A stretch of 64,000 nucleotides of DNA from Lepidodermella squamata. Taxonomy: Eukaryota; Animalia; Gastrotricha. Of this stretch, positions 1,983 through 57,192 are shown one piece after another. The first letter of the stretch is position 1, and each line of letters opens with the position of its first letter. The notes under the pieces are model-generated. The model searched no databases. It was not told the DNA's origin and saw only the letters and a list, made by a program, of their open reading frames with translations. The position numbers were made by a program, and so were the translations under genes. The stretch lies in contig JBLDXI010000011.1 of assembly GCA_047495785.1 (NCBI GenBank), forward strand, positions 558,001-622,000, written 5' to 3'.

Positions 1983-4205
1983 ATGGCGTCTACACCTTAC
2001 AAGTCTATGTCTGAGTTCACAATAGTCAAACTACTGGGCCGCGGTGGCTTCGGATCCGCGTGGCTATGCAAGCGCAAGAACGACTTTGCGGAGTATGTAG
2101 TGAAAGGAGTCAGTCTATCCGAAATTCGGCGTAGATACATGGGCAATGAAGAGTTGGCCGAAAAACTTATCAACATGGCCAGAAAAGAGGTACGATTTGT
2201 TTCAATCAAGTTCTTGAAATATTGAAGATCTGATTTCCAAAGCACCTAAATATGACGAAATTCAATCACACAAACATTGCCCGAGTCTTCGGAGCTTTTG
2301 AAAGTAATCAAATTTCCAAGATTTGAGACATTCCGGCATGATATGTTCACCCTCAGGCTTGAACGAAGACGTAGATGCTGCGAGGAAGGGCGATTTGATG
2401 TACTACCTGGTCCTGGAATTTTACGAGGGCGGCGATTTGAAGAAGTACTGCGAGAAGGCAGCCAGCCCAATACCTGAAGTGTTAATTCAGAAATGGTCAC
2501 GTCAACTCGTTTCGGCCGTCACGTTTTTGCACGACATCGAACTTGTACATCGCGACATCAAGCCGGAGAAAATTTTGTTAACTGGCGATGGGAAAAACGT
2601 GAGACTAGGCGATTTCGGGATAGCTAAAATTTTCAATCCGTAAGATAAAACCGTAAGATATAAGAGATCGCCAGCTTATCGAATTTTACTTATTGCAGGG
2701 AGGCCGCAACAACGTTTACTGGCGTGGCTACGTGGATTTACGCCGCTCCTGAGATTTTCGACGGCGAGCGACATACACCAGCGAGCGATTGGTGGTCGCT
2801 CGGCGTTACGTTGTTCGAAATCTCGAATTTCATAAAACCTGTAATTTATTTAAGATTTTGAGAAATTAAATCAGGGTTAAACTGTTTTTCAGTTTGACAC
2901 TCAACTCGCCATCATAAAGTAATTTGGTAATAATTGCGGAACCGATTATTTCGTTAAATTTGTTGCTAAGCAAACCTCCTAAACCATTCGATCAATCTCG
3001 AGGCTATTCAAGCGAATTTCGATATTTTGTCTTGTCGATGATTGAGAAAGATGTTCATCGCCGAGCGACTGCAGATCAGCTTCACAAGAGCAGTTTTCTG
3101 CTTAAAACAGCCAAGGCGGAAGCTGCTGATCGCCAGTCTGAAACTCCGGTAAAACAACCTCTTAAGCGCTTTATGGATTGTTCAAGGATTCATGTAATAA
3201 CAGGAACCAGCTATTATTTACCCTGGTAACCCACAGGTACTTTGTTGGCTCTTTGATTCTCATTGATTCTTGAGACAGCCATTGTGCGATTTACAGGTGC
3301 TCATCGAATGCGTGGCTGCGAGAAAAGACCTACCCAAATTGGTGCAACTCTTATCAGACAGGAGGCTCGGATTGAGCGCCGACTGTAAAGACAAAGACGG
3401 AAATCCGCTACTGTTACTTGCTGCTCTAAATGGCTATAATGACGTTGTGGAAACTCTGGCAGGCCAGTTTAAAGCCAATGTTGAGGCAGCCGATCAAGAT
3501 GGACGTACACCACTGTACGTCGCCGCCAGGAATGGCAACGTCGAGCTTGTGAGAACGCTGGCTGGCCGGTACAAGGCCAAAGTTGAGGCAGCTATAAGAA
3601 ATGGCTGGACACCATTGCACATCGCCGCCGCGAATGGCCATGTCGAAGTGGTGAAGACGCTGGCTGGCCAATTTAACGCCAATGTTGAGGCAACAATGAA
3701 AGACGGCTGGACGCCATTGCACATCGCCGCCAGGAATGGCAACGTCGACGTTGTGAAGACGCTGGCTGACCGGTACAAGGCCAATGTTGAGGCAGCCGAT
3801 AAAGATGGCGCAACACCACTGCACATCGCCGCCGGGAATGGCCACGTCGAGGTGGTGAAGGCACTGGCCGGCCAATTTATTGCCAATGTTGAGGTAGCTG
3901 ACATCAATGGTTTTACACCACTGCACATCGCCGCCCAGAATGGCCACGTCGAGGTGGTGAAGACACTGGCTGGCCCATTTAACGCAAATGTTGAGGCAAC
4001 CGAAAAACACGGCTTAACTCCGTTAATGGCCGCTGCGGTTTACGGCCAACACGCGGTAGTCGATACGCTGGTCAATGCATTTCGAGCAAATGTCAGAGCG
4101 GCCTGCAAAAAGGGGAAAACCGCTTTGAGCTATGCGGTTAACTGCCCCACGACTGTTACAGCCGCGAACAAGCAAAAAACAATTGATATCCTGTTAACAC
4201 TTTAA
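1983..4205 (+). CDS. NEK-like Ser/Thr kinase fused to C-terminal ankyrin repeats (copy 1, near-canonical kinase, 7 full ANK units plus caps); exons approx. 1983-2189, 2243-2303, 2357-2639, 2699-2840, 2893-2918, 2971-3148, 3204-3236, 3297-4205
   Basis: LGRGGFG, YVVK, HRDIKPEKILL, LGDFGIAK, YAAPE, SDWWSLG and YSSEF..FVLSM motifs joined in frame by ~52-60 bp GT-AG introns; 34-aa GxTPLHxAAxxGHVEVVKTL repeats. Confidence 0.9.
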
Positions 4206-5541: not shown

Positions 5542-8500
5542 ATGGCATCGCCCTACTCGTTCCGATCTATAGCTGAGTTCACGGACTTTACCCGTTTGTC
5601 GAGTAACTCCGAGAAACTCCTCCGAGGCATGTGACGTAGATAGGACGCCGCACTAAGAGGTTTTCGGACACGAAAAACTGAAGTCAGACTAATAAGGGGC
5701 AAAGTTCATCTTTTCAAATTTAATAAGATGAATCATCTCATTATTTTCCACCCAAATATTTCTCTTGCTATTTCTGTGTAATTTTGAGCAGATGGTGCCA
5801 TTTCATCAGCTTAGTTCATCTTTAAAGATGCATCTCCTCTTTGTTTCGTCTCGGAAACCGCGCCAAATCACTACTTTTTGCGATCTTCGAAACTTGAACT
5901 AATTAATTTTAAATTTTTAAATTTTAATTATTAAACAATTTCAAAATGAGCCCCACCATTTTATTTTTTTTAAGCTGCAAATTATTCTGAATATTAATGA
6001 GGAAAAAAGTGAACACGTCTTCTTGTCTTCTGGCGTGCTCTGAGTGCGGCGTCCTATCTACGTCACATGCTCCGAGGTGGATATTCATGCCAACGCAATG
6101 AGTGCTATCCTTACGAGTTTGTCATTAAAAAAGCTAATTTGACCAAGCTGCAGGAGGAATTCGAGAAAGACTTTGAAACAATCGCTCGACTTCTCCGCGA
6201 AAAAGTAAGGAATGTGCATATCTTCGACATGGCATCGTTTATGCTGATTTATCCTATTTTCAGGATTCGATGATGGTAAAAATTAACCATCCAAATATTG
6301 TCCGAGTATTTGGCACGTTCGAAGGTTCGGAAATCATTCTCTCACGTAAAACTCATCCACTCGATTTGTTTTAGAGGCATACCCGGTTAGTGACGTTGCT
6401 TGTTATAAGCACTCCATGCACCATTTGGTGATGGAGTTGTGCGGCGGTGGGAGTTTCGAAACTCTGATCAAAGCTGGAGGTGAGCCGATTCGCGAAGTTA
6501 GGCTTCAAAGTTGGTCTCGCCAGCTCGTTTCGGCTTTGCATTATCTACACAAGCGAGACATGGTACATGGCAACATTAGGCCAAGCAATATTCTGCTGTC
6601 GAAGAACCAAGGCACTGTGAAACTGGGAGAACTAGGAATAATGGAAACCTTTAATCCGTAAAGCCTCCAGTTTTGATTTTTAATCTAACTTCCATCCGTA
6701 ATATTTCAGAAAATCAAAAACGAGTTCTCTATCGCAAGAAATGCGTGACTATTGGCCACCTGAAGTATGGAATGGTGCGCGAATGTCACAAGCTGGTGAT
6801 GTCTGGTCGCTGGGTGTTACGCTTTACGAACTCGCAAACTGCATAAGACCAGTATGACATTGACAAAACCACAAAACCCTAAAAGTTTAGCATAATTTAT
6901 TTTACGTAGTTCGACCTAATGCACAAGGTCATGACGTAAGTCAAATTCAGTCTTACTGCTGCAAAGTGAAAAGTGTATCTTGGTGAAATTATTTCACATT
7001 TCGAGATAAGAAATAGTTCACTGTGCCTATAGCGCCGCCCGGCGGAGGGCCTATTATAAATAAAACTAACACATGCTGAGATAAGAAAGAGTTGGTGGCC
7101 ATGGCCCGTGGCATATATCCCAAGTCTATACGCGAAAACCGATAGACGAAATACCTAGAATGATTTAGTTTTCGAACTTAGTTATGGCTCGCGAATAAAC
7201 ACTCTTAACTTTGCAGCAGTCACCTGAAATAACTCAATCTCGAATCTGCCTTGTTTAGACGCGAAGCTCAGCCTTTCGACGAGTCTCGTGGTTATTCAAC
7301 ATATTTCCAAGAATTTGTAATGTCCATGCTAACTAAAAATGCCGAGGTTCGACCGAGAACTGATCAGCTTTTAAACGACAGATTTTTTCTAAACCAACCG
7401 ACGAAAAATGTGAGATTTTGCCAGATCGAAATGAGTATTACGACGGTGCTTTCTTCCTGTTTTTTTCAGGCGGATTCCTCCACAACACCTCAACCAGATG
7501 AAAAGACTGTTCAGGTATTGAATAAACTAACGCCGAGCAAACTGATGCGTTGATTTCACTTGACAGGAGTTATTTGACTGCGTGTTGGCGAAAGATGAGT
7601 CGAAATTAGTGGAGCTGCTGATGAACAGGGAGCTCGGTCTTAGCTCTTACTGCAGAAACGAATATGGGGCTACATTACTGCATATAGCTGCTATCAAAGG
7701 CTACAACGACATTGTGGAGATCCTTGTCAGGCAATTCAACGCCAATATTGAGGCAGCCCTTGAAAATGGCACTACACCATTGTACATCGCCGCCAACAAA
7801 GGCCAAATTGAGGTTGTGAAGACATTGGCTGGCGAGTTCAACGCAAACGTTGAGGCAGCTGATAATGAGGGACGAACACCCTTGTACGTCGCCGCCCTCC
7901 AAGGCCACGTCGAAGTTGTGAAGTCACTGGCTGGCCAATTTAACGCTAATGTTGAGTCAGCAGATAAAGATGGCTGCACACCATTGTACATTGCAGCCCT
8001 CCAGGGCCATGGCGAGGTGGTGAAAATACTTGCTGGGCAGTACAGCGCCAATGTAGAGGCAGCCGATGAAGTTGGACGTTCAACACTGTTCGTCGCCGCC
8101 TTGGAAGGCCACGTCGAGGTTGTGAAGACACTGGTTGAAAGGTTCAAAGCGAATGTTGAGGCGACCAACATAAATGGTGCTACACCATTGTTCATCGCCG
8201 CCAAGAATGGACAAGTCGAAGTTGTAAAGATTCTGGCTGGCCAGTTTAACGCCAACGTAGAGGCAGCCATTGACGATGGCGCCACACCGTTGTACATCGC
8301 CGCTGAGAATGGTCATGTCGAAGTTGTGGAAACACTAGCTGGCCAGTTCAGCGCCAATGTAGAAGCGGAAACCAAATTGGGTGCTACACCGTTGCACGCC
8401 GCCGCCTTTCAAGGCCACGTCGAGGTTGTGAAGGCACTGGCTGGTAGGTTTAAGGCAAATGTGGAGGCAGCCATTAACGATGGCGCTACGCCGTTGTACA

Positions 8501-9303
8501 TCGCTGCCGAGAATGGTCATGTCGAGGTTGTGGAGATACTAGCTGGCCAGTTCAACGCCAATGTAGAAGCCGCAGCCATATTGGGTGCTACACCATTGCA
8601 CGTCGCCGCTGTCAAAGGCCACGCCGAGATAGTGAAGACACTGGCTGGTAAGTTTAAAGCCAACGTTGAGGTGGTCAATGCGAATGGCGCTACACCACTG
8701 TACTTCGCCGCTTGTTTTGGCCACGTCGAAACTGTGAAGACGCTGGCTGGCGAGTTCAGCGCAAACGTCGAGGCTGCCTACAGAGATGGCACTAGGCCTA
8801 TACACGTTGCCGCCATCCAAGGTCACATTGAGGTGGTTAAGACATTGGCTGGTCAGTTCGGGGCCAATGTTGAGGCAGCCGATGGAGATGGTCGGACAGC
8901 ATTGTTTATCGCTGCAGAAAAAGGCCACGCCGAGGTGGTGCAGACACTCGCTTCCCAGTTTAAAGCGAATGTTGAGGCGGCCAATAAATGGGGCGCTACG
9001 CCACTGTACGTCGCCGCCGGCTTCGGCCACGCCGACTTGGTGAGGATACTGGCTAGCCAGTTTGGTGCCAATGTTGAGGCAAGGGGTGAAGATGGCCTCA
9101 GACCGTTAATGGCTGCTGCTTTATTCGGTCGACACGTAGTAGTTGATATGCTGATCAATGAATTTCGAGCTGGTGTCAACGCGGCCTGCAGTGAAGGACA
9201 TACCGCGCTGCATTATGCTAATAAGCATAACTGCTGTTTGCCTGTTGCAGACGAGGACAAGCGGAAAGTAATTGAAGTCCTGAAAAAGGCGAATGCTAAA
9301 TAA
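5542..9303 (+). CDS. NEK-like pseudokinase-ankyrin fusion (copy 2, 15 ANK units); exon 1 interrupted by a MITE
   Basis: MASPYSFRS...KLLRG|GYSC, HPNIVRVFG, HGNIRPSN instead of HRD, GELG instead of DFG, YWPPE, DVWSLG; same intron positions as copy 1; open ANK exon ~7567-9303. Confidence 0.75.
5628..6069. mobile_element. 442-bp MITE with ~32-bp TIRs and 8-bp TSD (hAT- or P-like)
   Basis: TSD CTCCGAGG at 5620-5627 and 6070-6077; TIR CATGTGACGTAGATAGGACGCCGCACT / AGTGCGGCGTCCTATCTACGTCACATG. Confidence 0.93.
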
Positions 9304-10228
9304 CAATGTAATTTGACGATTGCGAAAGATTTGATTTGATTTGATTTGCCATGGCGTTTTGGAAAATTTGATTTGAAATGATTGATTAAAGAAGACCTGT
9401 GATTTACTGAATAAATGAAGACAAATCAAAGTCTCTGCTGCATTCATTGATTTTTCCAATATCAAAATTCTGAAAAGCTGAACATTGATTTTTATTCTGT
9501 TTCTACCCGGTACTCAAATTTAAACGCTGATGTTGTCTCGGACTTAATCGCCAACGATATCTAGGGCTAAAAAGTGAAAAATGTCGAAGATGAATAACTA
9601 GGTTTCACTTGTTTGCGCTTGCTATCTATTTCGCAAGATAAAATAACATTTCTTGTGATAAACATTCATTTTGTAACTATCGAACTATATGTTGTTTCCC
9701 TAAAATTGTCGGGCTGCATTCTTTAGGGCGTAGCAGCTTGAAAATATATAATAAATAAATGAACCATATCAGTGGCTCAGGTTCAAAAGTTCGCTCGCTC
9801 TAGCGTCTTATCACTGTAACATAGAGAAAAAATTATAAAATGAGAAATAGGGTCACTTTGTTCTCTATGCACTGTAACCAACGGCATAAGGAGCATTGCT
9901 GTTGATATTACCCTGCTAATTTAGCTTATATAGATTATAGATCATGCCTTTTTTATTTTGAGAAACATCTTTAGCTGCTTGGAGATGACATCGCCTTACT
10001 CGGTTGTATCAATGGCCGAATTCACGGACGTTAAACCGTTGTTGCCCTACGAGAAACTCCTCAGAAACGGATATTCATGCCGACGCAATGGGTCCGAGTT
10101 TGTCATTAAAAAAACTAATCTGACCAAGCTGCGGAAGGAATTCGACGTTGAAACAATTACTCAACTTCTTCGCAAACAAATAAGGAATACGCCTTTTTTC
10201 ATTTGCATTCTCATTTTGTGCAAAACTA

Positions 10229-10749
10229 CCGTATATGCCGAATTAATATCCTGAGTATCTTATTGTTTCAAAACAACCAAAAAACGGGGGCTTATTCAGG
10301 CTGGGGTCCAAAAATGAGCTGGGGCACTATTTATTGCAATGTAAGTTTGAAGGTTCTTAGCACAAATAGAATCAGAAGAAATTGAAAGTTCATGAAATCA
10401 AATCCCAAATTTCATCGAATCTTTCATCGAAATTTCGTTTTTTTTCATCTTCTTCCGCGTTTTTTTCGATGATCAGGAAGATTTTCTTAATTTTCCTCGC
10501 CTTAAGAGCAAAGTTCTCAAGTTTTAGATGAATTATTTCTCGCAATTAATATTCGCAAACGATCTTTCGGCCAGTTACGGGGTTCGTAATTGAAAATTAA
10601 TGCAAAATATCATTGCGCGGTGTTTCAATTTGTGTCGCGGGCTGCAATTGTAGGCGTGGGTTCTTATTGTTTCAAACGACCTGAAAACTGGGGGCTTAAA
10701 CAGGCTGGGGAATTAAATTGAGTATGGGATAATAATTCGGCATATACGG
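10229..10749. mobile_element. Tc1/mariner-pogo-like MITE with TA target duplication
   Basis: TA|CCGTATATGCCGAATTA ... TAATTCGGCATATACGG|TA; internal subterminal direct repeat TTATTGTTTCAAA...GGGGGCTTA..CAGGCTGGGG. Confidence 0.85.
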
Positions 10750-11152
10750 TAATTTCACAGGTAGTTTTTTCTTCTCCTCTGCGTCTTCATTTGCGTTTTT
10801 CATTTTCTTACTCCTTTTATTAAAAGAAACCAAGAAAACTAAGACAACTAATTTTCGATGATTATGATTAAAATTAAAGCTCTTAATAATATTTATTCAG
10901 CGATTAAGTTGGCGGCGTCAGAGAAGACTATTTTATTTGAAAATCCAGCCTCAAAACCAGTTTATTTCCGGGGTACGTGTAACAAACAAAACCGATTGCT
11001 GCATGGTTCATGGTTGAAAACTTCGTGCCGAACATTTAATAAATCGAAGTGGCCCCTAATTTCGGCGGTTTTTTAAGCAATTAGTTCGGGATTTAGTTGG
11101 GACATATTTCTTATCGAAGAAAAACTTCAGCAAACAAATAAAAACGTTTACA

Positions 11153-11225
11153 GGCTGTGGGATTTGAACCCTTCTTCACGCGTTCCACGCCCAGGCTCTC
11201 ACACAACCTACTGTCTTGGCAATTG
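11153..11225 (-). other. tRNA-derived (Pol III B-box) fragment, possible SINE head
   Basis: Reverse complement contains GGTTCAAATCCCACAGCC; no full cloverleaf recognised. Confidence 0.3.
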
Positions 11226-12725
11226 TGATCGATTTTTTGCTACTTGACTTGTGCTCCCTAAACCCTAAGCGAATAATTGATTAAGCATCGAAAACTGAAA
11301 ACTGCGTTCGGATTGCTATTGAGAAGACTTGGATGTGGACATTTTATTGTTACGTCTATTATGTTGTTTTCAGGATTTGAGTATGATGAAAATTAAGCAT
11401 CCAAACATTGTCCGAGTATTTGGCACGTTCGAAGGTTCGTTTGATATGCGCTCACGTGAAACTCATCCCAAAATTGTATTTCAGAGGAATACCGGGGTGG
11501 TGACGTCGCTTGTTCTAAGCACTGGATGCACCATTTGGTGATGGAGTTTTGCGGGGGCGGGAGTTTCAAAACTCTGATCGAAGCTGGAGGTGAACCGATT
11601 CGCGAAGTTAGGCTTCGAAGTTGGTGTCGCCAGCTCGTCTCGGCTTTGCATTATCTACAAAATCGAGGCAGTGTCCATGGCAACATTAGGCCAAGCAATA
11701 TTCTGCTATCGAAGCACCATGGCACTGTGAAACTGGCAGAGTTGGGAATTATCGAAACCTTCGACACGTAATGCCATCAGTTCAGATGTGATGATTTTAC
11801 ATCAATTTTATCTGTAACATTTCAGAAAATCAAAAACTATTCTTCTATTACAAACAATGCGCAGCTATTTATCACCCGAAGTATGGGATGGTGCGCCTAT
11901 GTCAGAAGCTACTGACGTCTGGTCGCTGGGCGCTACGTTTTACGAACTTGCTAACTTCAAAAAACCTGTATGATATTTAATTAAAGTTGAAATTTGAGCA
12001 TAAATTATTTCAAATAGTTCGACCTAATGCACCAGATCCAGACGTAAGTCTAATTCAATCTGACCGCTGCAAAGGGAAAAGTACATCGAGGCAATTTTTT
12101 TGATATTAGCTCATAGGGGTGTTGGCCATGATATCCTAAGTCTATAGTCGAAGACCATTGGTCAAATTACATCACAATGACGGAGCTATCACGTACAGAC
12201 AGAGTTGTCCATGGGTCGGGTCTTCAATTATAGACCGAGGACAACTCTGCGTACATGAGACCTACGGTGTGATTCAAAAAGGTTGCCCACCGCATCATAT
12301 AGGCACGTGTTCTAATCTTGGCTTTAGCGGCCTTTCTGATTCACACTGTACTAGGAAGCTGGTGCTAGAATCCTCCCAACCAAAAATCTCTGGCTGGACT
12401 CCATAGAATTTTATAGATTTGTGGGATCGTTGCGAATAATCTAGCCACTAGACCATTGTTTTCCCCCGCGAGATTCATTCTACAGATCGTCGACTTATAG
12501 CAGCTGATCGTCGACTTAAAAAAACTGCAAATCTTCCACAAAATTAAATTTAAAATTTAAAACACTCTTTACGCATGTGTCACTGATATCAAATTTATGA
12601 TAAAGGTCATAAGAAAGTAGGATATTAAGGGTATGTCGAGAGCGTCCATCCAGCGTTGAGAAATTAAAATCTCAGCCGTTTATTAGTCAAGAGTTTAGAT
12701 TCGTCAAGATACTGCAAGTTACACT

Positions 12726-13064
12726 CATTGTGCTTGAGCTAAATAGTAGAATTTCTGCGGGCGCGCTGATTGGTCAATCGATCGTTGCTATGACTCCCGG
12801 ATGAAACATGTTTGTTGTGCGATCCATGAAATTTTTTGCAACAAGTGTTTTTTGCCGCAGTAAATTGCTACGATTATTACGGGGTTTACGCTCGTTGTCA
12901 ATGGAAACCGTGCAGCGGGTGTGGCAAGGTCATTTTTTGCATAAATACAAAATAATTTATCAGTGGATTGCACGACTAAATTGTTTTATCCCGGAGTCGT
13001 AGCAACAATAAATTAACCGATCAGCGCGCGGGTCAAAGTGCTACTTACTACTTGAAACACAATG
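12726..13064. mobile_element. Palindromic MITE in an intron of copy 3
   Basis: Termini CATTGTG...CACAATG; inverted arms CGCGCTGATTGGTCAAT..GTTGCTATGACTCCCGGATGAAACA; absent at the homologous position of copy 2 (ACACT|CTT). Confidence 0.7.
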
Positions 13065-15025
13065 CTTGCAGCGGTCAGTTGGATAATTTAATCTTGAATC
13101 TTTCTTGTTCAGAATTGAAGCTCATGGTTTCGACAAGTCTCGTGGTTATTCAAAAGATTGCCAGCAATTCGTAATGTCCATGCTAACGAGAAACCCCAAG
13201 GATCGCCCGAAAACTGATCGTCTCATAGAAAACAGCTTTCTACTGAAATCAACAGCGCAAAAGGTGAGATTTAACGGTTCCCAAACTTTCCGGTTTTTAT
13301 GACATGGTAGTTTCCTATGACCAGGCCTAGTAGGACAAGAGTAGGGCACCATTTAAAATATTGAAATTAGATTGGAAGATGGGAGAATTTTATAAGCTAA
13401 GGATTGCTTGTTAACCTTTTCATAGCGATATTATTTATATGCAGGAGAAAACATATTTTACAGCAGATCTAGAGGTTTTCAAAGGCCCTGATCCCAATTT
13501 TGAAATCCATTTGTCTTTATCTATCACCGTTAAGACTGCACGATAACTGGCCGATCTCGGCCTATCCGCCAAGCTTTTTTCAGGCGATTTTTTGAGCACC
13601 CTAATTTCCGTGTCTGGTGCTTCCAGTTTTAAAATTTTAGATTCTAAATTACTCCCATGAATGTACATGATTCTACCTCGCTTATATCATCGAAAAAAAT
13701 TCAGTTTAAAAAGAAGTTTTGGAGGCTTAGAATTCAGATCTGAATTAAGCTTTTCCAGTTTTTCTCGCGACAGTTTTTGCGGCACAAAAATCACGCACTC
13801 CGCCTGTTTAAGTTTTGGCGGATAGGACGAATTCGGATTTCCAACTCAAATCATTAAAACAGAGGTAAATGAGACAATGGAGGACACGGCGGTATTTTTT
13901 GTTGAATCAAAAAATGATCGGAAACCTATGGATTATCTAGTTTAACCAAATCATAATTCTAATCTCAGGTTGGCTATTTTCAAATTGCTAATATGCCTTG
14001 GCCACGCAAGATAACGGTGTCCTGGTCTCAAAACCTTGTAGCCAGAATTAAAATAGAATATTCCTCAAAAGACCGATCAAGATTTCATCAAATTCAATTT
14101 TCTGCGAATTCTTAAAGTCGAAATTTAAAGATATCAACCATTTACTCATGTTATAAGCATACAAATATGGAACAATTTTAAGACAAATGTCATTGGGGAA
14201 TGTTTGTTTTTTTAAATTAAATTACCAAAAATGACAAAAGCGAGTGTTTTCTAGACATTACTTTTGGTGATTTTGGGGGTGTTAAGGGCTCGCCGTGATT
14301 GTGTCCATTCTGAAAGCATTGCGTTTCTTCAGGCCACAACGAACATATCACGACAACCGTACGAAAACGATGTTCAGGTATTGAATGAAGGAACGTAGAA
14401 CAAATTGAAAAGTTGATAGTGGTTATGCTTTACAGAAGTTATTTGCCTGCATGCGGGCGAATGATGTGTCGAAATCAGTGGAGCTGTTGGCGAACCCGAA
14501 GCTCCGTCTTGGCGCTGACTGCAGAGACACAGATGGAAAGCCTTTACTGCACATCGCCGCCCAGAATGGCCACGTCGAGATGGTGGAGACACTGGCTGGC
14601 GAGTTCAACGCCGATGTTGACGCAGCCGACATACTTGGCCTAACCCCGTTAATGGTTGCTGCATCATTCGGCCGATACGCAGTAGTCGATACTCTGATAA
14701 ATAAATTTTTTGCAGATGTCGACGCGGCAAGCAGTAAAGGATCTAATGCTCTGTACTATGCTCATTACTGCTCTACACGTGTTAAAGCCGAGGACAAGCG
14801 AAAAACAATTACACGCACTCGTTTCACGCCTACACAATAAAAGCTATACTACTGCGGTCTAGTTTTTTGTTCATTCACAAGAGGTTTTCGATTTCAAACA
14901 GCACCTCTATTTCTTATAATTGTTTTAATGCCAATCTATTCTCTGAGTTTTCTTAAAATCGTTTTTTTCAATTCAAAATCGGGATTTAGGATTTCACAAT
15001 TTGTGGGCAATTTCTTTTTAGGAAA

Positions 15026-15445
15026 ATGTCTAAGCATGAATCCGGCTCTCTGAAACGAAAAGAGAAGCGAGAGATGAGGCCGATTCAAACTTTCTTTCAA
15101 AAGTTCCAACATCATTCGCATTTGGCTTCGCTAATCTAGCCCCGCTTTCCGATGCTAATAATGAAGTCGACGTTGAACCTCAAAATAACCAATTCGAAAT
15201 TCCATCCAATCTGAAACTGGAGGTGGTGAATCAATTGAGTCCATTACAGTTAATTTAGATGACCCTTTCTTTTGGTCGCCAAATGACGCCGAGGCTTTTT
15301 TTAGAAAAGGAATTTCATCTGTTCACAAAGCCACCACTGCCAACATCGATTTTAATGCAACGAAAAGAAGTTTCGGAAACTTTTCTCGTGCTTTAACTCC
15401 TGAAATGCTGCGTTCATGTTTGCCTAATGGCGAGGAGGCGCCTTG
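15026..15445 (+). pseudogene. Possible degenerate N-terminus of a hAT (ZMYM1/TTF-type) transposase
   Basis: MSKHESGSLKRKEKR..IQTFF, LDDPFFW and CLPNGEE in shifting frames resemble hAT N-termini; recognition by eye only. Confidence 0.3.
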
Positions 15446-16239
15446 AAATTATTTGATTTTCTTTGAAATTATTTTGATTTGATTTTGATTTGATCTTCAC
15501 AAATGCTTTTTTGCTCCGTTTGCAAGTTATTTTCGGATAGCGCCAATATTTTGATGTTATAGCACCCGTAACCCGAGTGAAATAAGGAATCCCGAGCATG
15601 AAATTCGGACATACAAGGACTGCAAAAGCCTCATACCCATACGCCAATGAATAACTGGAAATGGGCCACTATCTTCAAAATTCAAGGAAGTTCAAGGGAA
15701 AATGGAAATTTCAACATTTCGATATTTGGAAAAATTGATTCTCAAAATGTCAGCAAATTTTCTACGTTTAATTCGCAAAGAAAAATGTCATTCTCCACTG
15801 TGACTGCTAAATATAAAACGGCTACGACGATGTACTGAGATGTATTGACGTTATTTCCCCGCCGCGAGTGAGAAAGTCCAACGCATTGCCTCTAACGGAT
15901 CTTTTCAAATCGTGGGCGGTTGCGAAGCGGCAGATAAAGGAAGCGAAAAGTCCGTTTTTTAGGAAAAAGATTTTTCTTATAACTTACGGCCCGTTTACTT
16001 TTCTTATCGCAGTCTTATCGCGTTGGAACCCCATCTAATCGACTAAAACAAGACTAATCATCAACAACAGGATGATTAGGATAAAGCCGACACATGTCGG
16101 AGGTGACGTCTGGCGTATAAAAGCAGTTCCAATCTAAAATATTTCGCTTCAAACTTTCAACTTAGGATGTACATTCCCGAAAGATTTTTTTCACTGCATT
16201 CACTTTTGCTTTTGCGTAGATCGCGCCTTTTAATATCAA

Positions 16240-18676
16240 GAAACTTCTTTAGCTGCTTGGAGAACTGATCAGCTTGCAAACGATAAATTTCTACTGCACC
16301 CGACAGCGAAAGAAGACATGATGGTGAGATCAGATCAGGAGGATGAGTATGATGCATTCCTCCATCTGTTTTTCAGGCGGACTCCTCTGCAACCAAAACA
16401 CTACCACAGCCAGATGAAAAGGCTGTTCAGGTATTGAATGAACTAACGTCGAAAAAACTGATGCGTTGATTGTGATTATACTTGACGAACTCGCGAACAA
16501 TAGAAGACCAGTATGTCATCGGCTTGACGTTGAAACTTTTGCGTAATTCAAGTATTTTATGCAGTTCGATCCAACGCACATGATCTTGACGTGAGTCACG
16601 GTTCAATCTGGAATAACTAAATTTTAAATATGTATTGCGTAGACTTGAAGCTCAGCCGTTCGACGCGTCTCGTGGCTATTCAACAAATTTCAAGGAATTC
16701 GTAATGCTTATGCTAACTAAAAGCGCCGAAGATCGACCTAAAACTGATCAGCTGTCAAATAACAGTTTTCTGCTGAAAGATGTGAGATTTCAGGTCAGAT
16801 CAGGATTAGGAATACAATGGTGTTTTTTCAGGTCAATTCCTCGACGACAACAGTTCCTCAACCGGACGAAAAGGCTGTTCAGGTATTGAATGGGGAAATG
16901 TCGAACAAACTGATCTTATTGCGTGATTATACTTGACAGGAATTGTTTGAAAGCGTGCGGGCGAACAATGGCTTAAAATTACAGGAGATGCTGATGAACA
17001 GGGAGCTCGGTCTTAGCTCTGACTGCATAAACAAAAACGGGGCTACAATACTGCATCTTGCTGCTCTTAGTGGCTACAACGGCATTGTGGAGATCCTAGT
17101 CAGGCAATTCAACTCGAATGTTGAGGTAGCCCTAAAAAATGGCGCTACGCCATTGTACGTCGCCGCCCTTCAAGGCCACACTCAGGTGGTAAAGACACTA
17201 GCTGGCGAGTTCAACGCAAACGTTGAGGCAGCTGATAATGATGGACGAACACCATTGTACGTCGCCGCCCTCGAAGGCCACCTCGACGTCGTAAAGATCC
17301 TGGCTGGCCAATTTAACGCTAACGTCGAGTCAGCAGATAACGAAGGCTATACGCCAGTATATGTCGCCGCCTTCGAAGACCATGACGAGGTGGTGAAGAC
17401 ACTTGCTGGCCAGTACAAGGCCAATGTAGAGGCGGCCGATGAAGACGGACGTACGCCATTGTGGATCGCCGCCGCGAAAGGCCACGTCAAAGTTGTGGAA
17501 ACACTAGCTGGCCAATTTAACGCCAATGTTGAGTCAGCAGATAAAGATGGCGCAACACCATTGTACGTCGCCGCCTTCGAAGGCCACGTCGAGGTTGTGA
17601 AGACATTGGTTGACAAGTTCAAAGCGAATGTTGAGGCAGCGAATATGAATGGCGCTACACCATTGTTTATCGCCGCCAAGAATGGGCAAATCGAGGTGGT
17701 AAAAACATTGGCTGGCGAGTTGAAAGCAAACGCGGAGGCAGCCCTTAATGATGGCGCCACACCGTTGTACATCGCTGCCGAGAATGGCCATGTCGAGGTT
17801 GTGGAGACACTGGCTGGCCAGTTCAACGCCAATGTTGTAGCGGCAACCATATTGGGTGCTACACCATTGCACGTCGCCGCCATCCAAGGCCACGTCGAGT
17901 TAGTGAAGACACTGGCTGGTATGTTTAAAGCCAATGTTGAGGTGGTCAATGCTAATGGCGCTACGCCACTGCACTGCGCCGCCTGTTTTGGCCACGTCGA
18001 AACTGTGAAGACGCTGGCTGGCGAGTTCAGCGCAAACGTCGAGGCAGCCGTGAAAAATGGCGATAGGCCTATACACGTTGCCGCCATCCAAGGTCACATC
18101 GAGGTGGTTAAGACATTGGCCGGCCAGTTCGGGGCGAATGTTGAGGCGGCCAATAACAATGGAGCTACACCATTGCACTTCGCCGCCCAGGAGGGCTACG
18201 TCGAACTCGTAAAACTGCTGGCTGGTCAGTTCGGGGCCAATGTTGAGGCAGCCGATGGAGACGGCCGGACAGCATTGTTTATCGCTGCAGAAAAAGGCCA
18301 CGCCGAGGTGGTGCAGACACTGGCTTCCCAGTTTAAAGCCAATGTTAAAGCGGCCAATAAATGGGGCGCTACGCCACTGTACGTCGCCGCCGCCTCCGGC
18401 CACGCCGAGGTGGTGAGGACACTGGCTAGCCAGTTTGGTGCCAATGTCGAGGCAGCCTGTGAAGATGGCCTCAGACCGCTAATGGCCGCTGCGTTATTCG
18501 GCCAACACGTAGTGGTCGATATGCTGATCAATGAATTTCGAGCTGATGTCAACGCGGCCTGCAGTGAAGGACATACCGCTCTGCAGTATGCTAATAAGCA
18601 TAACTGCTGTTTGCCTGTTGCAGACGAGGACAAGCGGAAAGTAATTGAAGTCCTGATAAAAGCGAATGCTAAGTAA
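16240..18676 (+). pseudogene. Rearranged kinase-ankyrin copy 4: most of the kinase deleted, intact 15-unit ANK exon (~16940-18676)
   Basis: Pre-ATG sequence AGCTGCTTGGAGA joined directly to GAGAACTGATCAGC (kinase end); second jump at ~16485 into sequence near-identical to 20771-21300; 577-aa open ANK frame resembling copy 2. Confidence 0.75.
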
Positions 18677-19925
18677 CTGAGCCACAAATGCGCATTATTT
18701 GTCATTTTCAGAATCATTTGCACAGATCGTTGATTTTACGTTTTCCTGCTAATTTCATTATAATAAGAGTTCATTATCAGAGTTGACCATCAGCTCAGAG
18801 CCGACATCGATTCAAAGTATCGATTTTTATTGATTTCGCCAATAATATAAAAATTATTGAAGGCCAAACATTGCAGTTTTTACGCAGCTAATGGGATCCC
18901 AAGTAGCTAAAAAAGGCCTGGGACACAGGAATAATCGGAATCATCCGGATTTCACAAAAAGAAATCACGAAAACAAATTATACCAGCATGCGGGCACTCC
19001 AGATTTCTGAGATGCCGATTTGGAATATGAAACGGCGTTGGATGTAAAGGATGAAAGGGATAGATGTAAGGGACTCAGACACGAAGGAGTGACGATCCCC
19101 GACTCTGACTAAGATTCTTACGGAGTTGAGAGCCCCTAGGTTGGGGCAAGAGTCGACCTGACCCGGCTAGACCTCAGAAAGTTTCCCAAGTCTAATTGAT
19201 GTTCAACCCCACTACAAACGGAATATCATCGACGTCATGATCCTCGATGTGGTTTGCTACCCACTCCTTCGCTTCGGCGGCATTCAAAGAACTATAGTTT
19301 CTTACGAGCGAGTCGTCTTGTCAACCTTTGACTTTGTCGCGGTGCTTTTGCAAGGCTTTTGTGGTACGTGAAATTATGAACCTGTTTCAGCGACAGCTTT
19401 GCTTTCTCTTGGAAACAGTCAATTCAATTTGGACAAGGTGTATTATGGTTGTCTGTTGAATGCACAGTTCAATGCTCAAGGCGCTGCATCAACGCTCAGA
19501 CGGACAAGGTCTGCAGCTTTTTCCTAACGCGCTTGAATCGTATCCGTTAAGTGAAAGATGGAATAATTATTGTTCATTCCTAGGCTGGTCAAGGTGGAGA
19601 CGCTGTCAACATCGTTGATTCAGATGAAGCGTCAGTTAACTTCAACGGATGTTTCCCGATAAATTATTAATTTTCACTTTTCACCGCTTGCGTTCTATTT
19701 CGCAAGATGAATAATAAAAACCCATCATTGCTTTGTAACACGGGACAAATTTCTCAAATATAGAAAGTCATATCAGCGGCAAGACGCCTCCGCCCTTGCT
19801 TGCTTCTTATCATCGAAACCAGCGGCAAGAAAAATTGGTGCTGATAGTATTGTCTACTATCTTTCACTTACATAGCACCGGCTTTATTGCCCTTAATTTT
19901 GAAGAAGTTCTTCACCTGCTCAGAG

Positions 19926-22754
19926 ATGGCATCGCCCTACTCGTTTGGATCAATGGCCGAGTTCACGGACGTTAGGCCGTTGTTGCTCAACGAGAAACTC
20001 CTCAGGAACGGATATTCGTGCCGACGCAATGCGTGTTACCCTTTCGACTTTGTCATTAAGAAAACTAATATGACCAGGCTGAAGAAGGAATTCGAGCAAG
20101 ACTTTGAAACAATTTCCCAGCTTCTCCGCGAAAAAGTGAGGAATTCATCCATTTTCAAGATCATTGGACTGCTAACAACTCGCCTTTCACTTCGTTTTCA
20201 GGATTCGAGAATGGTCAAAATTAACCACCCAAACATTGTCCGAGTATTTGGCACGTCGAAGGTTCGCTTGTAATGCGCTCACGTAGAACTTGCCAACAAT
20301 ATTGTTTCAGAGGAAAACCAGGGTGGTGAAGTCGCTTGTTTTAAGCACTCCATGTACCATTTGGTGATGGAGTTTTGCGGGGGCGGGAGTTTCGAAACTC
20401 TAATCAAAGCTGGCAAAGCTGGAGGTGAACCGATTCGCGAAGTTACGCTTCAAAGTTGGTCTCGCCAGCTCGTCTCGGCTTTGCATTATCTACACAGCCA
20501 AGACATTTTACATCGCAACATTAAGCCGAGCGATGTCCTGGTTTCGCAGAATCAAGGCACTGTGAAACTGGCAGAGTTAGGAATAATGGAAACTTTAAAT
20601 ACGTAAAGCCATCAGTTTGGAGTTTTAATCGAAATTCCAGCCGTAATATTTCAGAAAATCAAAAACAACTCCTCTATGGCAATCAATGTACGGCTATTTG
20701 CCTCCTGAAGTATGGAAAGGTGGATCCCTGTCACAAGCTGGTGACGTCTGGTCGCTGGGTGCTACGCTATACGAACTCGCGAACAATAGAAGACCAGTAT
20801 GTCATCGGCTTGACGTTGAAATTTTTGCGTAATTCAAGTATTTTATGCAGTTCGATCCAACGCACATGATCTTGACGTGAGTCACGGTTCAATCTGGAAT
20901 AACTAAATTTTAAATATGTATTGCGTAGACTTGAAGCTCAGCCGTTCGACGCGTCTCGTGGCTATTCAACAAATTTCAAGCAATTCGTAATGCTTATGCT
21001 AACTAAAAGCGCCGAAGATCGACCTAAAACTGATCAGCTGTTAAATAACAGTTTTCTGCTGAAAGATGTGAGATTTCAGGTCAGATCAAGATTTGGAATA
21101 CAATGATGTTTTTCAGGTCAATTCCTCGACGACAACAGTTCCTCAACCGGACAAAAAGGCTGTTCAGGTATTGAATGGGGAAATGTCGAACAAACTGATG
21201 GGCTTATTGCGTGATTATACTTGACAGGAATTGTTTGAAAGCGTGCGGGCGAACAATGGCTTGAAATTAGAGGAGTTGCTGATGAACAGGAAACTCGGTC
21301 TTCGCTCTGACTGCAGAAACATTGATGGGGTGCCTTTGCTGTTCCTCGCCGCCTACAATGGCTACGTCGAGGTTGTGAAGCTTCTAGCTGGCCAGTACAA
21401 GGCCAATGTAGAGACAGCCACGAATGATGGCAGAACACCATTTTGGACCGCCGCCTTCAATGGCCACGTCGAGGTTGTGAAGCTTCTAGCTGGCGAGTAC
21501 AAGGCCAATGTTGAGGCAGCCATGAATGATGGCAGAACACCATTGCTCGTCGCTGCCTACAATGGCCACGTCGAGGTTGTGAAGCTTCTAGCTGGCGAGT
21601 ACAAGGCCAATGTTGAGGCAGCCACGAATGATGGCGCTACACCATTGTTCGCCGCCGCCCAACAAGGCCACGTCGAGGTTGTGAAGCTTCTAGCTGGCGA
21701 ATTCAAGGCCAATGTAGAGACAGCCATGAATGATGGCGCTACACCATTGCACGTCGCCGCCTACAATGGCCACGTGGAGGTTGTGAAGCTTCTAGCTGGC
21801 CAGTACAAGGCCAATGTAGAGACAGCCATGAATGATGGCGCTACACCATTGCACGTCGCCGCCTACAATGGCCACGTGGAGGTTGTGAAGCTTCTAGCTG
21901 GCGAGTACAAGGCCAATGTTGAGGCAGCCATGAATGATGGAGCTACACCATTGCACGTCGCCGCCCAGGAAGGCCACGTCGAGGTTGTGAAGCTTCTAGC
22001 TGGCCAGTACAAGGCCAATGTTGAGGCAGCCATGAATGATGGCAGAACACCATTGCTCGTCGCTGCCTACAATGGCCACGTCGAGGTTGTGAAGCTTCTA
22101 GCTGGCCAGTACAAGGCCAATGTTGAGGCAGCCATGAATGATGGCAGAACACCATTGCTCGTCGCTGCCTACAATGGCCACGTCGAGGTTGTGAAGCTTC
22201 TAGCTGGCCAGTACAAGGCCAATGTTGAGGCAGCCATGAATGATGGCAGAACACCATTGCTCGTCGCTGCCTACAATGGCCACGTGGAGGTTGTGAAGCT
22301 TCTAGCTGGCGAGTACAAGGCCAATGTAGAGACAGCCATGAATGATGGAGCTACACCATTGCACGTCGCCGCCCAGGAAGGCCACGTCGAGGTTGTGAAG
22401 CTTCTAGCTGGCCAGTACAAGGCCAATGTTGAGACAGCCACGAAAAATGGCAGAACACCATTGTGGACCGCCGCCCAGGAAGGCCACGTCGAGGTTGTGA
22501 AGCTTCTAGCTGGCGAGTACAAGGCCAATGTTGAGGCAGCCACGAATGATGGCGCTACACCATTAATGGCCGCAGCATATAACGGCCAACACGCAGTAGT
22601 CGACACACTGATAAATGAATTCCGCGCAAATGTCAACACGGCCCGCAATGATGGACAAACCGCTCTGAATTTTGCTAACAATTGCTTGCCTCGTGTTACT
22701 ACCGAGAACAAGCGGAAAACAATCGAAATTCTCGCGAAGGCGAATGCAAGATAA
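19926..22754 (+). CDS. NEK-like pseudokinase-ankyrin copy 5 (13 highly homogenised ANK units); 1-bp deletion in exon 2
   Basis: HRNIKPSD, AELG, YLPPE, DVWSLG; exon 2 (20202-20261) is 60 nt versus 61 nt in copies 1-3; other splice sites canonical; open 507-aa ANK frame. Confidence 0.7.
21325..22650 (+). repeat. Coding 102-bp tandem repeat (ankyrin units), with three identical copies at 21972-22277
   Basis: Unit GGCCACGTCGAGGTTGTGAAGCTTCTAGCTGGC...GCCTACAAT recurs at 21972, 22074 and 22176. Confidence 0.95.
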
Positions 22755-24012: not shown

Positions 24013-26604
24013 ATGACAACGGCTCTTTCGCAGGATTATTCGAATTTTATCAAATCAGCATGCGGGCAGGAAGTTAGACTTCAGGCCTTGGGGCTAAGGA
24101 ACAGCTATTTAGCTAACAGTTCCCTCAGCCATTCAGCCCTCAACGAGCTGCTACTGCCGTTTCGCAAAAATCTCGACTCGTTCTTCCTCGTTGCTATGGG
24201 CTACTTTAATTACCGTAATCCTTTCAAAACTGTAACTGTACGTTATTTAAATTTCGATTTTTCTCAAGATATGAATATCGGCTTCATGCTGGTTGAAGTT
24301 GGACTGGTGCGGAAGAAAAATGCGACTAATACGCTGGTAAAAAACGCAACTTTCGGATGTAAGTTCGGATGTTTGGCTGATTTTTTGGATCGTCGAAAAA
24401 TAGAATTCGAGCTTGGGATAAATTCAATAAAAAATTCCCCAAGTCGGGAAAATTCTCAATTTAATTTTTTTTTTAGGCACAAAATTCCTAAATTCTGGAT
24501 TTCGGAACCGAACTGTTACCGACGGCCAATTTACCAGTTATACTTTTTTCGGAGCAAATATCGATTTTCGGTATCGATTTCAAAAATCAGTGATTTTTCC
24601 GATTTCTCGCATTTTTAAATATCAAGGGCATATTCCATATACTTCAATTTTTAAAATTTAAAATTTTAAAATAATTTGAACAGGTGGGCTAAAAATTTAA
24701 TTCTGAACTGATCAGCAATTTGATTTTTAAATTAATAAAAATTCGAAATTCCACTTCGATTTACAGTTTCTTATTCTTCGATTTTTGAGATTTTATGATT
24801 AATTTTGTAATTTTTTAGTCGTTCAAGCTTTGGCGTTTTTCGCCATCGGTTTCGGGCTCGGATTCGGCGATAGCTACAACAACGCGATAGGAACATCTTG
24901 GTTCGGCTTCAAACGAAACCCAGAAAACCCAGATTTCGCGTTATGGCTCTTCGAATACGCGTTTGCTGGAACCGCCGGCGCCATCGTGACGGGTTCCATC
25001 GCTGAACGCTGCCAACTAGCCGGCTATTTGATATACATTTTCTGGACAGCGGCCTTCACGTACCCTATGGTGGTTAGTTGGGCGTGGAACTCGGATGGCT
25101 GGCTGAAACTGGGCGGCGTCTACGAGTTCCAGGATGGAACCACTCAGCGGATTGGGTACCTGGATTTCGCTGGCTCGGGGGTTGTCCACCTTTCTGGTGC
25201 TACTTCAACAATAAGTGAGAAAAAATTTAAGTATTTCAAAAATATTAAAAAATCGTAGCTGACATTTTATTTTCATTTTTCAAAAATGTTATTCAAAAAT
25301 TCGTAATAATTTTTTTTTAATTCACAAAAATTACGGGAATCGATGTGATTAATTTGCAGTTTACCTGTTGTTTCTTGGTCCTCGAATTGGTCGGTTCAAA
25401 TCGAACGGCGAGTCGGTGGAATTTCCAGTTCGAGACTGGCCAATCGTTACATTCGGCGCCATGATTTTATTCACCGGTTTCCTCGCCTTCAATTCTGGAT
25501 CTCAGTTATCGATAAGCCGACTCGAAGACTATTCACCCGTGGCTAAAGCTACGGCTAATACATCAATAACATCATCAGCCGGATTTCTATTCGTCTTACT
25601 CGTATACAGGTATTTTGAATTTTGATTTTTTGAAAAATTTCAATTTTCCAATATTTAGGATTTCCAAATTTAAATCAGTTCGAAAAATTTCAATTGGAGA
25701 ATTTTTTTCAAGTTCTAATTTCAAAACTAAAATTATTTCGATAGTAATGCAATTTTAAAATTTCAAAAATCCAAATTTCAATTTTCTCAACAATTAATTT
25801 TATTTCGCAGATTTTATTATCGAAAATGGTCGTTGAGAGGTTCAATCGGGGGCGGTTTGACGGCCTGTGTAGCCAGCTGTTGTTCGGCCAACATTGTCGA
25901 AGGCTACGGCGCCTTCGCCATCGGAATTCTAGGCGGCCTCATGTACATTTTCATGATGTGGCTCCTCGTGAAATGCCGAATCGACGACGCAGCCGATGCC
26001 GTTCCAAGTTTGCTTGAATTCCACTTTCGTCCATCAATTTTATTTCAATTTTATTTTCAGTACATTGGGGAGGTGGATTTGTCGGAGTTTTAGCCGAAGC
26101 TTTTCTGAAACCTGATAGAGGAATCCTATACAATTGGGACCAAGCTTCAGGATACGTAAGTTTTCAACTTTTGGATTTCCCCAAATTTTTTAGAATTTTA
26201 TTTAAATTTATAAATTTTCCAAATTTGAAAATTATGATTTGAAATTTTATTTTCATGATTATTTTCATTTCTAAATTTTATTCTATTAGGTCCTAGCTTG
26301 GCAAGTGTTGGGAATGGTTGTAATCATGGTTTTCTCATCCGCCTCAACCTATTGCCTATGCGTAATCCTAAAAGCGTTCAATTTAATGCGGGTCGATCGC
26401 GAAACCGAACTCGAAGGCCTCGACATAGGCCACGGCCATGAAGAATGCTTCCAGACCGAAAAAACGCTGCTAGACACGCTATCAGAGGAAGATCTCATCA
26501 TAAACGGGCCGAAAATGCCGTGGCCTAAGTTGAGCAATGGCAACGATTGGTGCCTGGCGGATCTGAGCCGAATTTCAACGGCTTTCCGAATGAATGACCC
26601 ATAA
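24013..26604 (+). CDS. amt: Ammonium transporter paralog B, 7 exons (approx. 24013-24214, 24269-24358, 24819-25214, 25360-25609, 25811-26007, 26061-26155, 26290-26604)
   Basis: MNIGFMLVEVG, FEYAFAGTAGAIVTGSIAER, DFAGSGVVHLSG, LGPRIGRF, FLAFNSGS, IDDAADAVPIHWGGG, RVDRETELEGLD. Confidence 0.92.
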
Positions 26605-55855: not shown

Positions 55856-55903
<48 letters not shown>

Positions 55904-56765: not shown

Positions 56766-57192
56766 GGCTTTTACTTGCAACACGCAACACGGCTGCAACA
56801 TGCCATGTGCTGCTCATGTTATTAGTGAGCTATTCTTCTTCACGTTGTTATTTATTATATTGTTTTTATGCGTTGATGTTAAAATTTTGCTCATGGCACT
56901 GCACTAAAACTGTGATGCTGCCAATGTTTACCATTTACCAAACCGAAGCTGGATGCAAGCAAATATTGCATGCTGATGAGAGTTGCCTTTTAATCAAGTC
57001 AGCGCGTGAGCTGAACAACTTTCGAAATTGTATTGCTTGTGGTAATGTTTTTCCAGATTTCTCCAAAATTTTCTATAATGTATGCTTACAAGTACCTATG
57101 TACAACACTAAGAATTGACTGGGAGCAGCATACAACAACAAGGTAATAAAAAATTTGGATCATTCTCCCGTTTTGGTTAATGTATTAACACC

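Follow-up and report, generated by a model that had tools for sequence, protein, structure and literature searches.

Tandem kinase and pseudokinase genes with ankyrin arrays in the gastrotrich Lepidodermella squamata, and moderate evidence that groove positions diversify within the arrays

A stretch of 64,000 nucleotides from the gastrotrich Lepidodermella squamata (assembly GCA_047495785.1, contig JBLDXI010000011.1, here C11, positions 558,001 to 622,000 of the forward strand) carries long open reading frames (ORFs) that encode tandem ankyrin (ANK) repeats. The stretch, which we call the window and in which all positions below are counted unless another contig is named, is part of an animal genome of 121 Mb. 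Its repeats share a scaffold and vary at a few positions, which largely recall those randomised in designed ankyrin repeat proteins (DARPins), and a first-pass annotation had taken this as a sign of diversifying selection on a ligand-binding surface. The question raised by the locus is therefore what kind of genes these arrays belong to, and whether their variable positions have been driven apart by selection or have simply drifted. We consider it reasonably probable that they are tandem paralogues of a kinase and pseudokinase-ankyrin family, in which the columns of the ankyrin groove diverge faster than silent sites within arrays, especially in the young and homogenised array E.

Three ORFs on the + strand are ankyrin arrays: B at 7582-9303 (Pfam Ank_2 E=3e-143, Ank 1.2e-106), D at 16943-18676 and E at 21231-22754. 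Two further + strand arrays are present in the window, A at 3267-4205 and a short fragment, C, at 14408-14840. Together these mark five tandem paralogues, A-E, across 2398-22754, and the arrays of B, D and E are the 3' exons of three of them. None of the ANK ORFs begins with ATG. Upstream of them lie a conserved CAG acceptor, an intron of about 55 nt and a micro-exon of 45-51 nt; introns in this genome are about 50 nt long, with TTTTCAG acceptors. Further upstream are exons that match Pkinase and are conserved between the copies. Using the exon peptides of copy B in tblastn searches, we found kinase exons on the same strand directly upstream of the ANK exon at 31 of 40 sampled loci and in every copy in the window. 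Proteins of the family are thus likely to begin with a Ser/Thr kinase-like domain, which a short linker micro-exon joins to an ankyrin array that is encoded in one exon and carries its own caps at both ends. The gene models are corrected to kinase genes rather than ANK-only genes; the place of the arrays in kinase or pseudokinase genes had been missed in the first-pass annotation. An ATG at 16704 was considered as the start of an ANK-only gene and was dropped, the exon in question being kinase subdomain XI. The features of the five copies are as follows.

2398..3106, + strand: copy A, kinase-like exons (equivalents of exons 3, 4 and 6), from tblastn with copy B exon peptides and a motif alignment (VHRDIKP...GDFG).
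3267..4205, + strand: copy A, ankyrin array in a single exon with N-cap, 7 units of 34 aa and C-cap, from the ORF and its register (Pfam Ank_2 8.7e-59).
5542..7514, + strand: copy B, kinase-like exons from ATG 5542 to the linker micro-exon at 7470-7514, from exon pieces, a Pkinase match of 4.4e-15 on 6416-6661 and the motifs HGN and ELG.
5620..6069, + strand: insertion of 450 nt in exon 1 of copy B, made up of a miniature inverted-repeat transposable element (MITE) of 434 nt (5628-6061) and one copy of the target duplication, from an alignment of exon 1 of B and E.
7564..9303, + strand: copy B, ankyrin exon with N-cap, 16 units of 34 aa (the last a degenerate C-cap) and stop codon, from register and Pfam; the CAG acceptor just upstream is kept in all copies.
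10060..13245, + strand: copy C, kinase-like exons (HGN, ELG) with extra sequence between them, from tblastn, a Pkinase match on 11526-11771 and motifs.
14408..14840, + strand: copy C, very short ankyrin exon with N-cap, one unit, penultimate unit and C-cap, from period and register.
16485..16882, + strand: copy D, whose kinase part is reduced to the last exon (about 16647-16781) and the linker micro-exon (16832-16882); the segment matches copy E at 93-100% identity, and homology ends at 16485.
16940..18676, + strand: copy D, chimeric ankyrin exon of 16 units, E-like to about 16990 and B-like (85-95%) from about 17000.
19926..21167, + strand: copy E, kinase-like exons from ATG 19926 to the linker micro-exon at 21117-21167, with motifs HRN and ELG, from exon comparison and motifs; exon 2 lacks 1 nt that is present in B and C.
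21225..22754, + strand: copy E, homogenised ankyrin exon of 14 units, the internal units 85% identical in aa and 90% in nt and differing mainly at columns 2, 3, 4, 6, 10, 11, 14 and 15.

All of the units in these arrays are in perfect register with a period of 102 nt, or 34 aa, and the same is true of nearly all of 596 units in a sample of the wider family, for which 40 further loci were fetched and which covers 53 ORFs within 318 kb. The 33-residue ankyrin period that had been assumed is replaced by 34; the additional residue is F or Y at column 28, where 39% of generic ANK units aligned to the unit profile have a gap, and the fold is unaffected. We number the unit A1 D2 N3 E4 G5 x6 T7 P8 L9 x10 x11 A12 A13 x14 x15 G16 H17 V18 E19 V20 V21 K22 x23 L24 A25 G26 x27 F28 x29 A30 N31 V32 E33 A34, and refer to columns 2, 3, 4, 6, 10, 11, 14 and 15 as hypervariable. 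Arrays B, D and E hold 16, 16 and 14 units, a total of 46 when the degenerate C-cap units are counted, and each has one N-cap helix besides; the earlier figure of 52 is approached only when caps and fragment C are added to the count.

Among the 37 internal units of B, D and E the highest entropies, in bits, are at columns 14 (3.34), 2 (2.76), 3 (2.47), 15 (2.31), 10 (2.12), 4 (1.87) and 11 (1.81), while G5, A12, A13, V21, L24, A30 and N31 are invariant. Columns 2 and 3 are thereby more variable than columns 4 and 6; the latter, at 1.66 bits, ranks behind columns 18, 23 and 29 in the window and second (3.50 bits) among the 596 family units. The six positions named as variable in the first-pass annotation do all vary, and every residue pair that it listed for columns 14 and 15 (LQ, LE, KN, EN, FQ, CF, IQ, QE, YN, AK and GF) is present. 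Conservation of the N-cap and C-cap likewise holds across the copies in the window and genome-wide in the family. The description of the scaffold as almost invariant fits array E, with the unit identities given above, and does not fit B and D, where internal units are 62-63% identical in aa and 69% in nt.

A single-sequence AlphaFold2 prediction of the whole exon of copy D was useless, with a predicted local distance difference test score (pLDDT) of 43.8, and was replaced by a segment of seven units of E (units 2-8) modelled with a 61-row family alignment, which gave a pLDDT of 98.2 and a predicted template modelling score (pTM) of 0.92. The model predicts two helices per 34-aa unit, at columns 8-15 and 18-27, and Foldseek superposes it on ankyrin-B, -G and -1 with template modelling (TM) scores of 0.90-0.94 and a root-mean-square deviation (rmsd) of 0.8-3.3 Å. 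The arrays are accordingly modelled as canonical ankyrin solenoids. Since the helices are predicted at these columns, columns 2, 3, 4 and 6 would be in the beta-turn or loop and columns 10, 11, 14 and 15 on the first (inner) helix. That the hypervariable columns face the concave groove follows from established structures of ankyrin proteins and DARPins. At column 10 the canonical His of TPLH is mostly replaced in the 37 internal units (Y in 13, H in 11, F in 6, L in 4 and W in 3), and the pLDDT of the model is still 98.

The clearest indication of selection comes from comparing units within an array. Neutrality predicts that nonsynonymous diversity at the hypervariable columns, piN(hv), should equal synonymous diversity, piS, whatever the history of gene conversion, whereas in array E piN(hv) exceeds piS by a factor of 3.2 (1.55-7.5 by bootstrap over columns). 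Arrays B and D have ratios of about 1, with both quantities near saturation. When 35 arrays from the family are compared, piN(hv)/piS is above 1, with values of 1.35-3.83, in all but one of the nine that are most homogenised (nt identity of 0.81 or more), and older arrays range from 0.5 to 1.75; the corresponding ratio for the scaffold is 0.16-0.43 throughout.

Codon models were then fitted by maximum likelihood (ML) to 11 individual arrays, with branch lengths fixed from a global fit. These replaced IQ-TREE fits of a GY model to small column partitions with free branch lengths, which had returned contradictory values of omega (dN/dS) and negative likelihood-ratio tests (LRTs). The ratio of nonsynonymous to synonymous rate at the hypervariable columns, beta/alpha, is above 1 in 10 of the 11 arrays and nominally significant in five of these: 8.3 in array E (p 0.022, LRT 5.2), 7.4 in L011 (p 0.0095), 5.6 in L015 (p 0.05), very large in L032 (p 0.003) and 2.1 in D (p 0.022). 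Array B has a ratio of 1.6 (p 0.16), and four other arrays have ratios of 1.3-1.6 that are not significant. A fit by column in the manner of fixed effects likelihood (FEL), applied to 173 units of the closest subfamily, finds beta greater than alpha at columns 2, 3, 4, 6, 11, 14, 15 and 18, with p 0.0013 at column 4 and p 0.033 at column 6, and strongly purifying selection at the scaffold columns. Scaffold dN/dS is 0.18-0.36 in the various comparisons (0.18 between B and D, 0.23-0.31 within arrays), that is, under purifying selection.

A number of results weigh against diversifying selection, and they are best read together with the explanation that they favour, namely that there is no positive selection at all, that a weakly constrained groove surface drifts while the fold-determining scaffold is kept, and that recent amplification and gene conversion mimic an invariant scaffold. 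Positionally matching units of B and D (14 pairs, at least 75% nt identity) have dN/dS of 0.53-0.67 at the variable columns and 0.18 elsewhere. For 174 independent pairs of nearest units omega at the variable columns is 0.76 using the dS of these columns themselves and 0.93 using a global dS, with confidence intervals that touch 1, and is 0.36 outside these columns; pairwise estimates at hypervariable columns lie between 0.5 and 0.97. An ML fit of the GY94 model to 51 units of the window gives omega of 1.24 at variable columns and 0.33 elsewhere, and the former is not different from 1 (2dlnL 1.0). One array of the eleven, L040, has the opposite sign (beta/alpha 0.26, p 0.014), the p-values are mostly nominal (0.003-0.05), and the instability of the partition fits mentioned above also speaks for drift.

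The same explanation draws support from ankyrin proteins in general. We cut 482 units from the 120 best matches to the arrays, which are unrelated ANK proteins of no more than 45% identity, and aligned them to the same profile. Column by column, the entropy of these generic units tracks that of the units in the window (Spearman 0.75) and of the 596 family units (0.74), and at the eight hypervariable columns it is higher in the generic units (3.20 bits) than in the window (2.29 bits). By the entropy comparison proposed in the first-pass annotation, diversifying selection fails, as entropy at the hypervariable columns falls below that of unrelated ANK proteins, not above it. What does differ is the scaffold, at 1.58 bits in generic units against 0.63 bits in the window.

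On the other side, drift without selection has to account for the excess of piN in E, for the 8 of 9 homogenised arrays with ratios above 1, and for the rejection of omega = 0.5 in the window units (2dlnL 17.5), a fit in which omega = 2 is rejected as well. It must also account for beta/alpha above 1 in 10 of 11 arrays, given the rate of false positives: when neutral variable columns were simulated on the tree of E and the whole pipeline was re-run, the LRT exceeded 3.84 in 2% of 45 runs without recombination and in 4% of 45 runs with free recombination between columns, a scheme which covers that form of recombination and not every conversion scenario, with unit trees built from 102 nt. We regard the neutral explanation as possible, if somewhat doubtful. 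Because dN/dS is below 1 both for the matching units of B and D and for nearest pairs, the signal is one of diversification among the units of one array and not of ongoing change everywhere. Groove positions diversify faster than silent sites after units duplicate within an array and are then largely kept between orthologous units, a conclusion for which the evidence is moderate and not decisive. The original proposal of diversifying selection is thus moderately borne out for E, D and the young arrays of the family, and is not borne out for B or between orthologous units.

The resemblance to DARPins adds nothing to this evidence. Binz and colleagues are said to have randomised positions 2, 3, 5, 13, 14 and 33 of the DARPin module in 2003, and DARPin positions were chosen from the natural variability of ankyrin repeats. 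For that reason a match to them cannot count as evidence for selection; to argue from position is circular, and the resemblance is generic. The match is also incomplete. The DARPin positions correspond to columns 3, 4, 6, 14 and 15 and to column 1 of the next unit; five of the six vary as had been proposed, while column 1, the equivalent of position 33, is near-fixed as Ala (0.66 bits), and three columns that are fixed in DARPins as D, H and L (positions 1, 9 and 10, our columns 2, 10 and 11) vary here. DARPins carry their six randomised positions per repeat on the concave face (PMC3602593). Both kinds of protein have a consensus-like framework, dedicated N- and C-caps and variable residues on the beta-turn and at the end of helix 1, and the E-segment model superposes on DARPin M_R12 with a TM score of 0.91, rmsd of 1.4 Å and 45% identity. 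The module here is 34 residues, not 33.

The kinase-like domains differ between copies in their catalytic motifs. Copies B and C read HGN...ELG and copy E reads HRN...ELG, so that neither the HRD nor the DFG motif has kept its Asp, while copy A and 13 other sampled copies (about 40% of the sampled members) retain HRD...DFG. In a survey of 32 copies the HRD position reads HRD in 14, HRN in 7, HRA in 6, HGN in 4 and RRN in 1, the Asp being absent from 18, and the DFG position reads DFG in 14, GFG in 6, ELG in 5 and DLG in 5; another subfamily reads HRA...GFG. On these motifs copy B is a predicted pseudokinase. When a profile of exon 3 from intact members was compared with the PDB the best matches were NEK1 (76.4 bits), NEK7 (73.5), ULK3 (71.1) and NEK2 (70.9), which weakly suggests a NEK-like domain, closest to NEK kinases by a small margin; the searches used single exons, and that the NEK assignment comes from one exon with a 5-bit margin is a point against our reading.

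The condition of the local copies raises a different alternative, in which B-E are decaying duplicates, their open ankyrin exons being either relics or no more than silent sources for recombination into intact members of the family, so that their variation would say little about present function. Only copy A looks plainly intact, in the part of it that is mapped (its earlier exons are unmapped); B, C, D and E each carry a 5' lesion, and a different one in each case. In B it is the MITE in exon 1, with terminal inverted repeats of 26 nt and a target duplication of 8 nt (CTCCGAGG). The kinase exons of copy C are spread out and only two or three ankyrin units are kept, from which the copy is judged to be degenerate. 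Copy D has lost its kinase exons except the last: positions 16480-16990 are 93-100% identical to E, the sequence from about 17000 is 85-95% identical to B and only 58-75% to E, and the breakpoint lies within the N-cap coding sequence, which makes D a 5'-truncated recombinant of E and B. In E it is the 1-nt deletion in exon 2. As 5' lesions affect all the copies here except A, their arrays may have ceased to yield full-length protein, and this too must be set against our reading, as must the limits of the transcript evidence. A GT..AG joint at 16781>16832 and a junction between exons 2 and 3, both in run X1, are evidence of splicing; these two contig junctions are the whole of that evidence and fit D and E equally, the 5' parts being at least 98% identical. 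The reads are contig-level data of two runs, in which variant positions of D were left unused as paralogues may cross-map.

We nevertheless find decay of B-E improbable. Catalytic residues are absent from B, C and E, which is in its favour, yet the dead motifs are common to whole subfamilies with a conserved kinase fold, as is typical of functional pseudokinases. The ANK exons retain open frames of 507-577 codons, and the low dN/dS of the scaffold, given above, shows that they have been constrained. The MITE of copy B belongs to an element with dozens of copies in the genome; because two of these are 100% identical to it, the insertion must be very recent and the element family active very recently. 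Use of an AG acceptor 2 nt downstream could compensate for the deletion in E. The arrays themselves change by gain and loss of units and by recombination between copies. Unit B5 (8062-8163) resembles a hybrid of D5 and D6 (17435-17638), the former supplying its first half and the latter its second, and extra units are found in B (B8 and B9) and in D (D12); these look like the footprints of unequal crossing-over between units.

If the arrays are neither drifting nor decaying, our preferred reading of within-array diversification suggests how such a protein may work. The ankyrin array would be a putative protein-binding face that diversifies after unit duplication and is then held, and the kinase or dead-kinase domain could be an output or scaffold module. 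Matching units of the older pair B/D keep most of the residues at their hypervariable columns. Homogenised arrays in which variation is confined to the binding face are characteristic of recognition systems that evolve fast, as in fungal NOD-like receptors (NLRs; NOD, nucleotide-binding oligomerisation domain), the variable lymphocyte receptors of lampreys and plant leucine-rich repeat receptors. A bolder proposal sees in the family an animal equivalent of those fungal receptors that shuffle their repeats, with a germline repertoire of dozens of intracellular kinase/pseudokinase-ankyrin proteins whose grooves are diversified by unit duplication, recombination and positive selection to recognise changing non-self or allogeneic ligands, the kinase-like domain being the signalling output. 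We consider this unlikely on present data.

By analogy the fungal NLR repeats appear to be the closest system in evolutionary mode, and the Nek expansion of Giardia the closest in architecture. The fungal NLR-type proteins (signal transduction ATPases with numerous domains, STAND) contain near-identical ANK, TPR or WD repeats, with polymorphic repeat numbers and with reshuffling both among repeats and across loci (Dyrka et al. 2014, PMC4986451), and their ANK repeats are under positive selection at five concave-face positions (PMC4986451). Repeats of such high internal conservation are rare in metazoans, at 0.8% (PMC4986451), where the repeats must be no less than 85% identical over 100 aa or more. 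Array E, with a mean of 85% in aa, is borderline by this measure, L012 and L011 have about 89-90% identity in nt, and B and D are below it. The likeness lies in near-identical repeats within one protein, in a repeat number that varies (here between paralogues) and reshuffles, and in positive selection at concave-face positions, for which the ratios here are 8.3 in E, 2.1 in D and 1.6 (not significant) in B, with lower pairwise estimates. The differences are that the host is an animal, that the units are of 34 aa, that an internal identity of about 85% is seen in some arrays only, E among them, and that the upstream exons encode Pkinase and no NACHT or NB-ARC domain. As it is without a NOD domain, the kinase-ankyrin family is not an NLR.

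In the Nek expansion of Giardia the kinase precedes 1-26 ANK repeats in 67% of the members, and catalytic residues are missing from 71% (Manning et al. 2011, PMC3218828), and the association of Nek and ANK was seen in no species but Giardia (Manning et al. 2011, PMC3218828). The L. squamata family shares the N-terminal kinase followed by a variable ANK array, massive expansion with rapid turnover, the many catalytically dead members (18 of 32 without the Asp of HRD) and, by a weak assignment, best kinase matches to NEK1, NEK7 and NEK2. The Giardia repeats are of a distinct TALM class, whereas the motif here is TPL[YHFLW], and common descent with the Giardia genes is unlikely. Limited literature searches found no description of a kinase or dead kinase joined to such arrays in an animal. 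A kinase or pseudokinase and an ANK domain do occur in one animal protein in RIPK4/ANKK1 and in the pseudokinase ILK; these are single-copy conserved genes with about 4-11 divergent repeats, and in ILK the ANK domain is N-terminal. The kinase exon here best matches NEK and ULK in the PDB, not RIPK.

The family-specific penultimate unit and C-cap are found at a minimum of 48 loci in the genome (150 of 1127 candidates were scored), and the number of units per array ranges from 2 to at least 34 among the sampled paralogues. A search of 5.8 billion proteins found no relative above 45% identity outside this genome and returned only generic ANK proteins. The family therefore seems, more probably than otherwise, to be a lineage-restricted family of animal genes. 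In this invertebrate, with its small genome, such arrays are coupled to a kinase or dead kinase at no fewer than 48 loci. Should the signal of selection prove robust, the family would be a tractable candidate for an innate repertoire of a new kind, serving recognition or signalling, and a natural test of how ankyrin paratopes evolve; should it fail, the gene models are still corrected and similarity to DARPin positions is shown not to be evidence of selection. Two identical or near-identical copies of the family form an inverted pair 20 kb apart on another contig, C78:705-1868 (-) and C78:20705-21868 (+). A further pair, C32:108500-112500 and C7:2297500-2301500, is likewise identical or near-identical and, being split over two contigs, could be haplotigs or a recent segmental duplication.

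ORF density in the window is low. Among the neighbouring genes are class C G protein-coupled receptors (GPCRs; ANF_receptor and 7tm_3), which form a cluster of paralogues on both strands with long, single-exon ORFs that carry the ANF_receptor ligand-binding domain, one of them with 7tm_3.

38800-41172, - strand: class C GPCR paralogue.
45877-48243, + strand: class C GPCR paralogue.
51400-52116, + strand: class C GPCR paralogue.
52783-54393, + strand: class C GPCR paralogue.

An ammonium-transporter exon lies at 24830-25258 (PF00909, 8.7e-25), and a single-exon ORF for a family-2 glycosyltransferase at 55848-56801 (PF00535, 5.5e-25).

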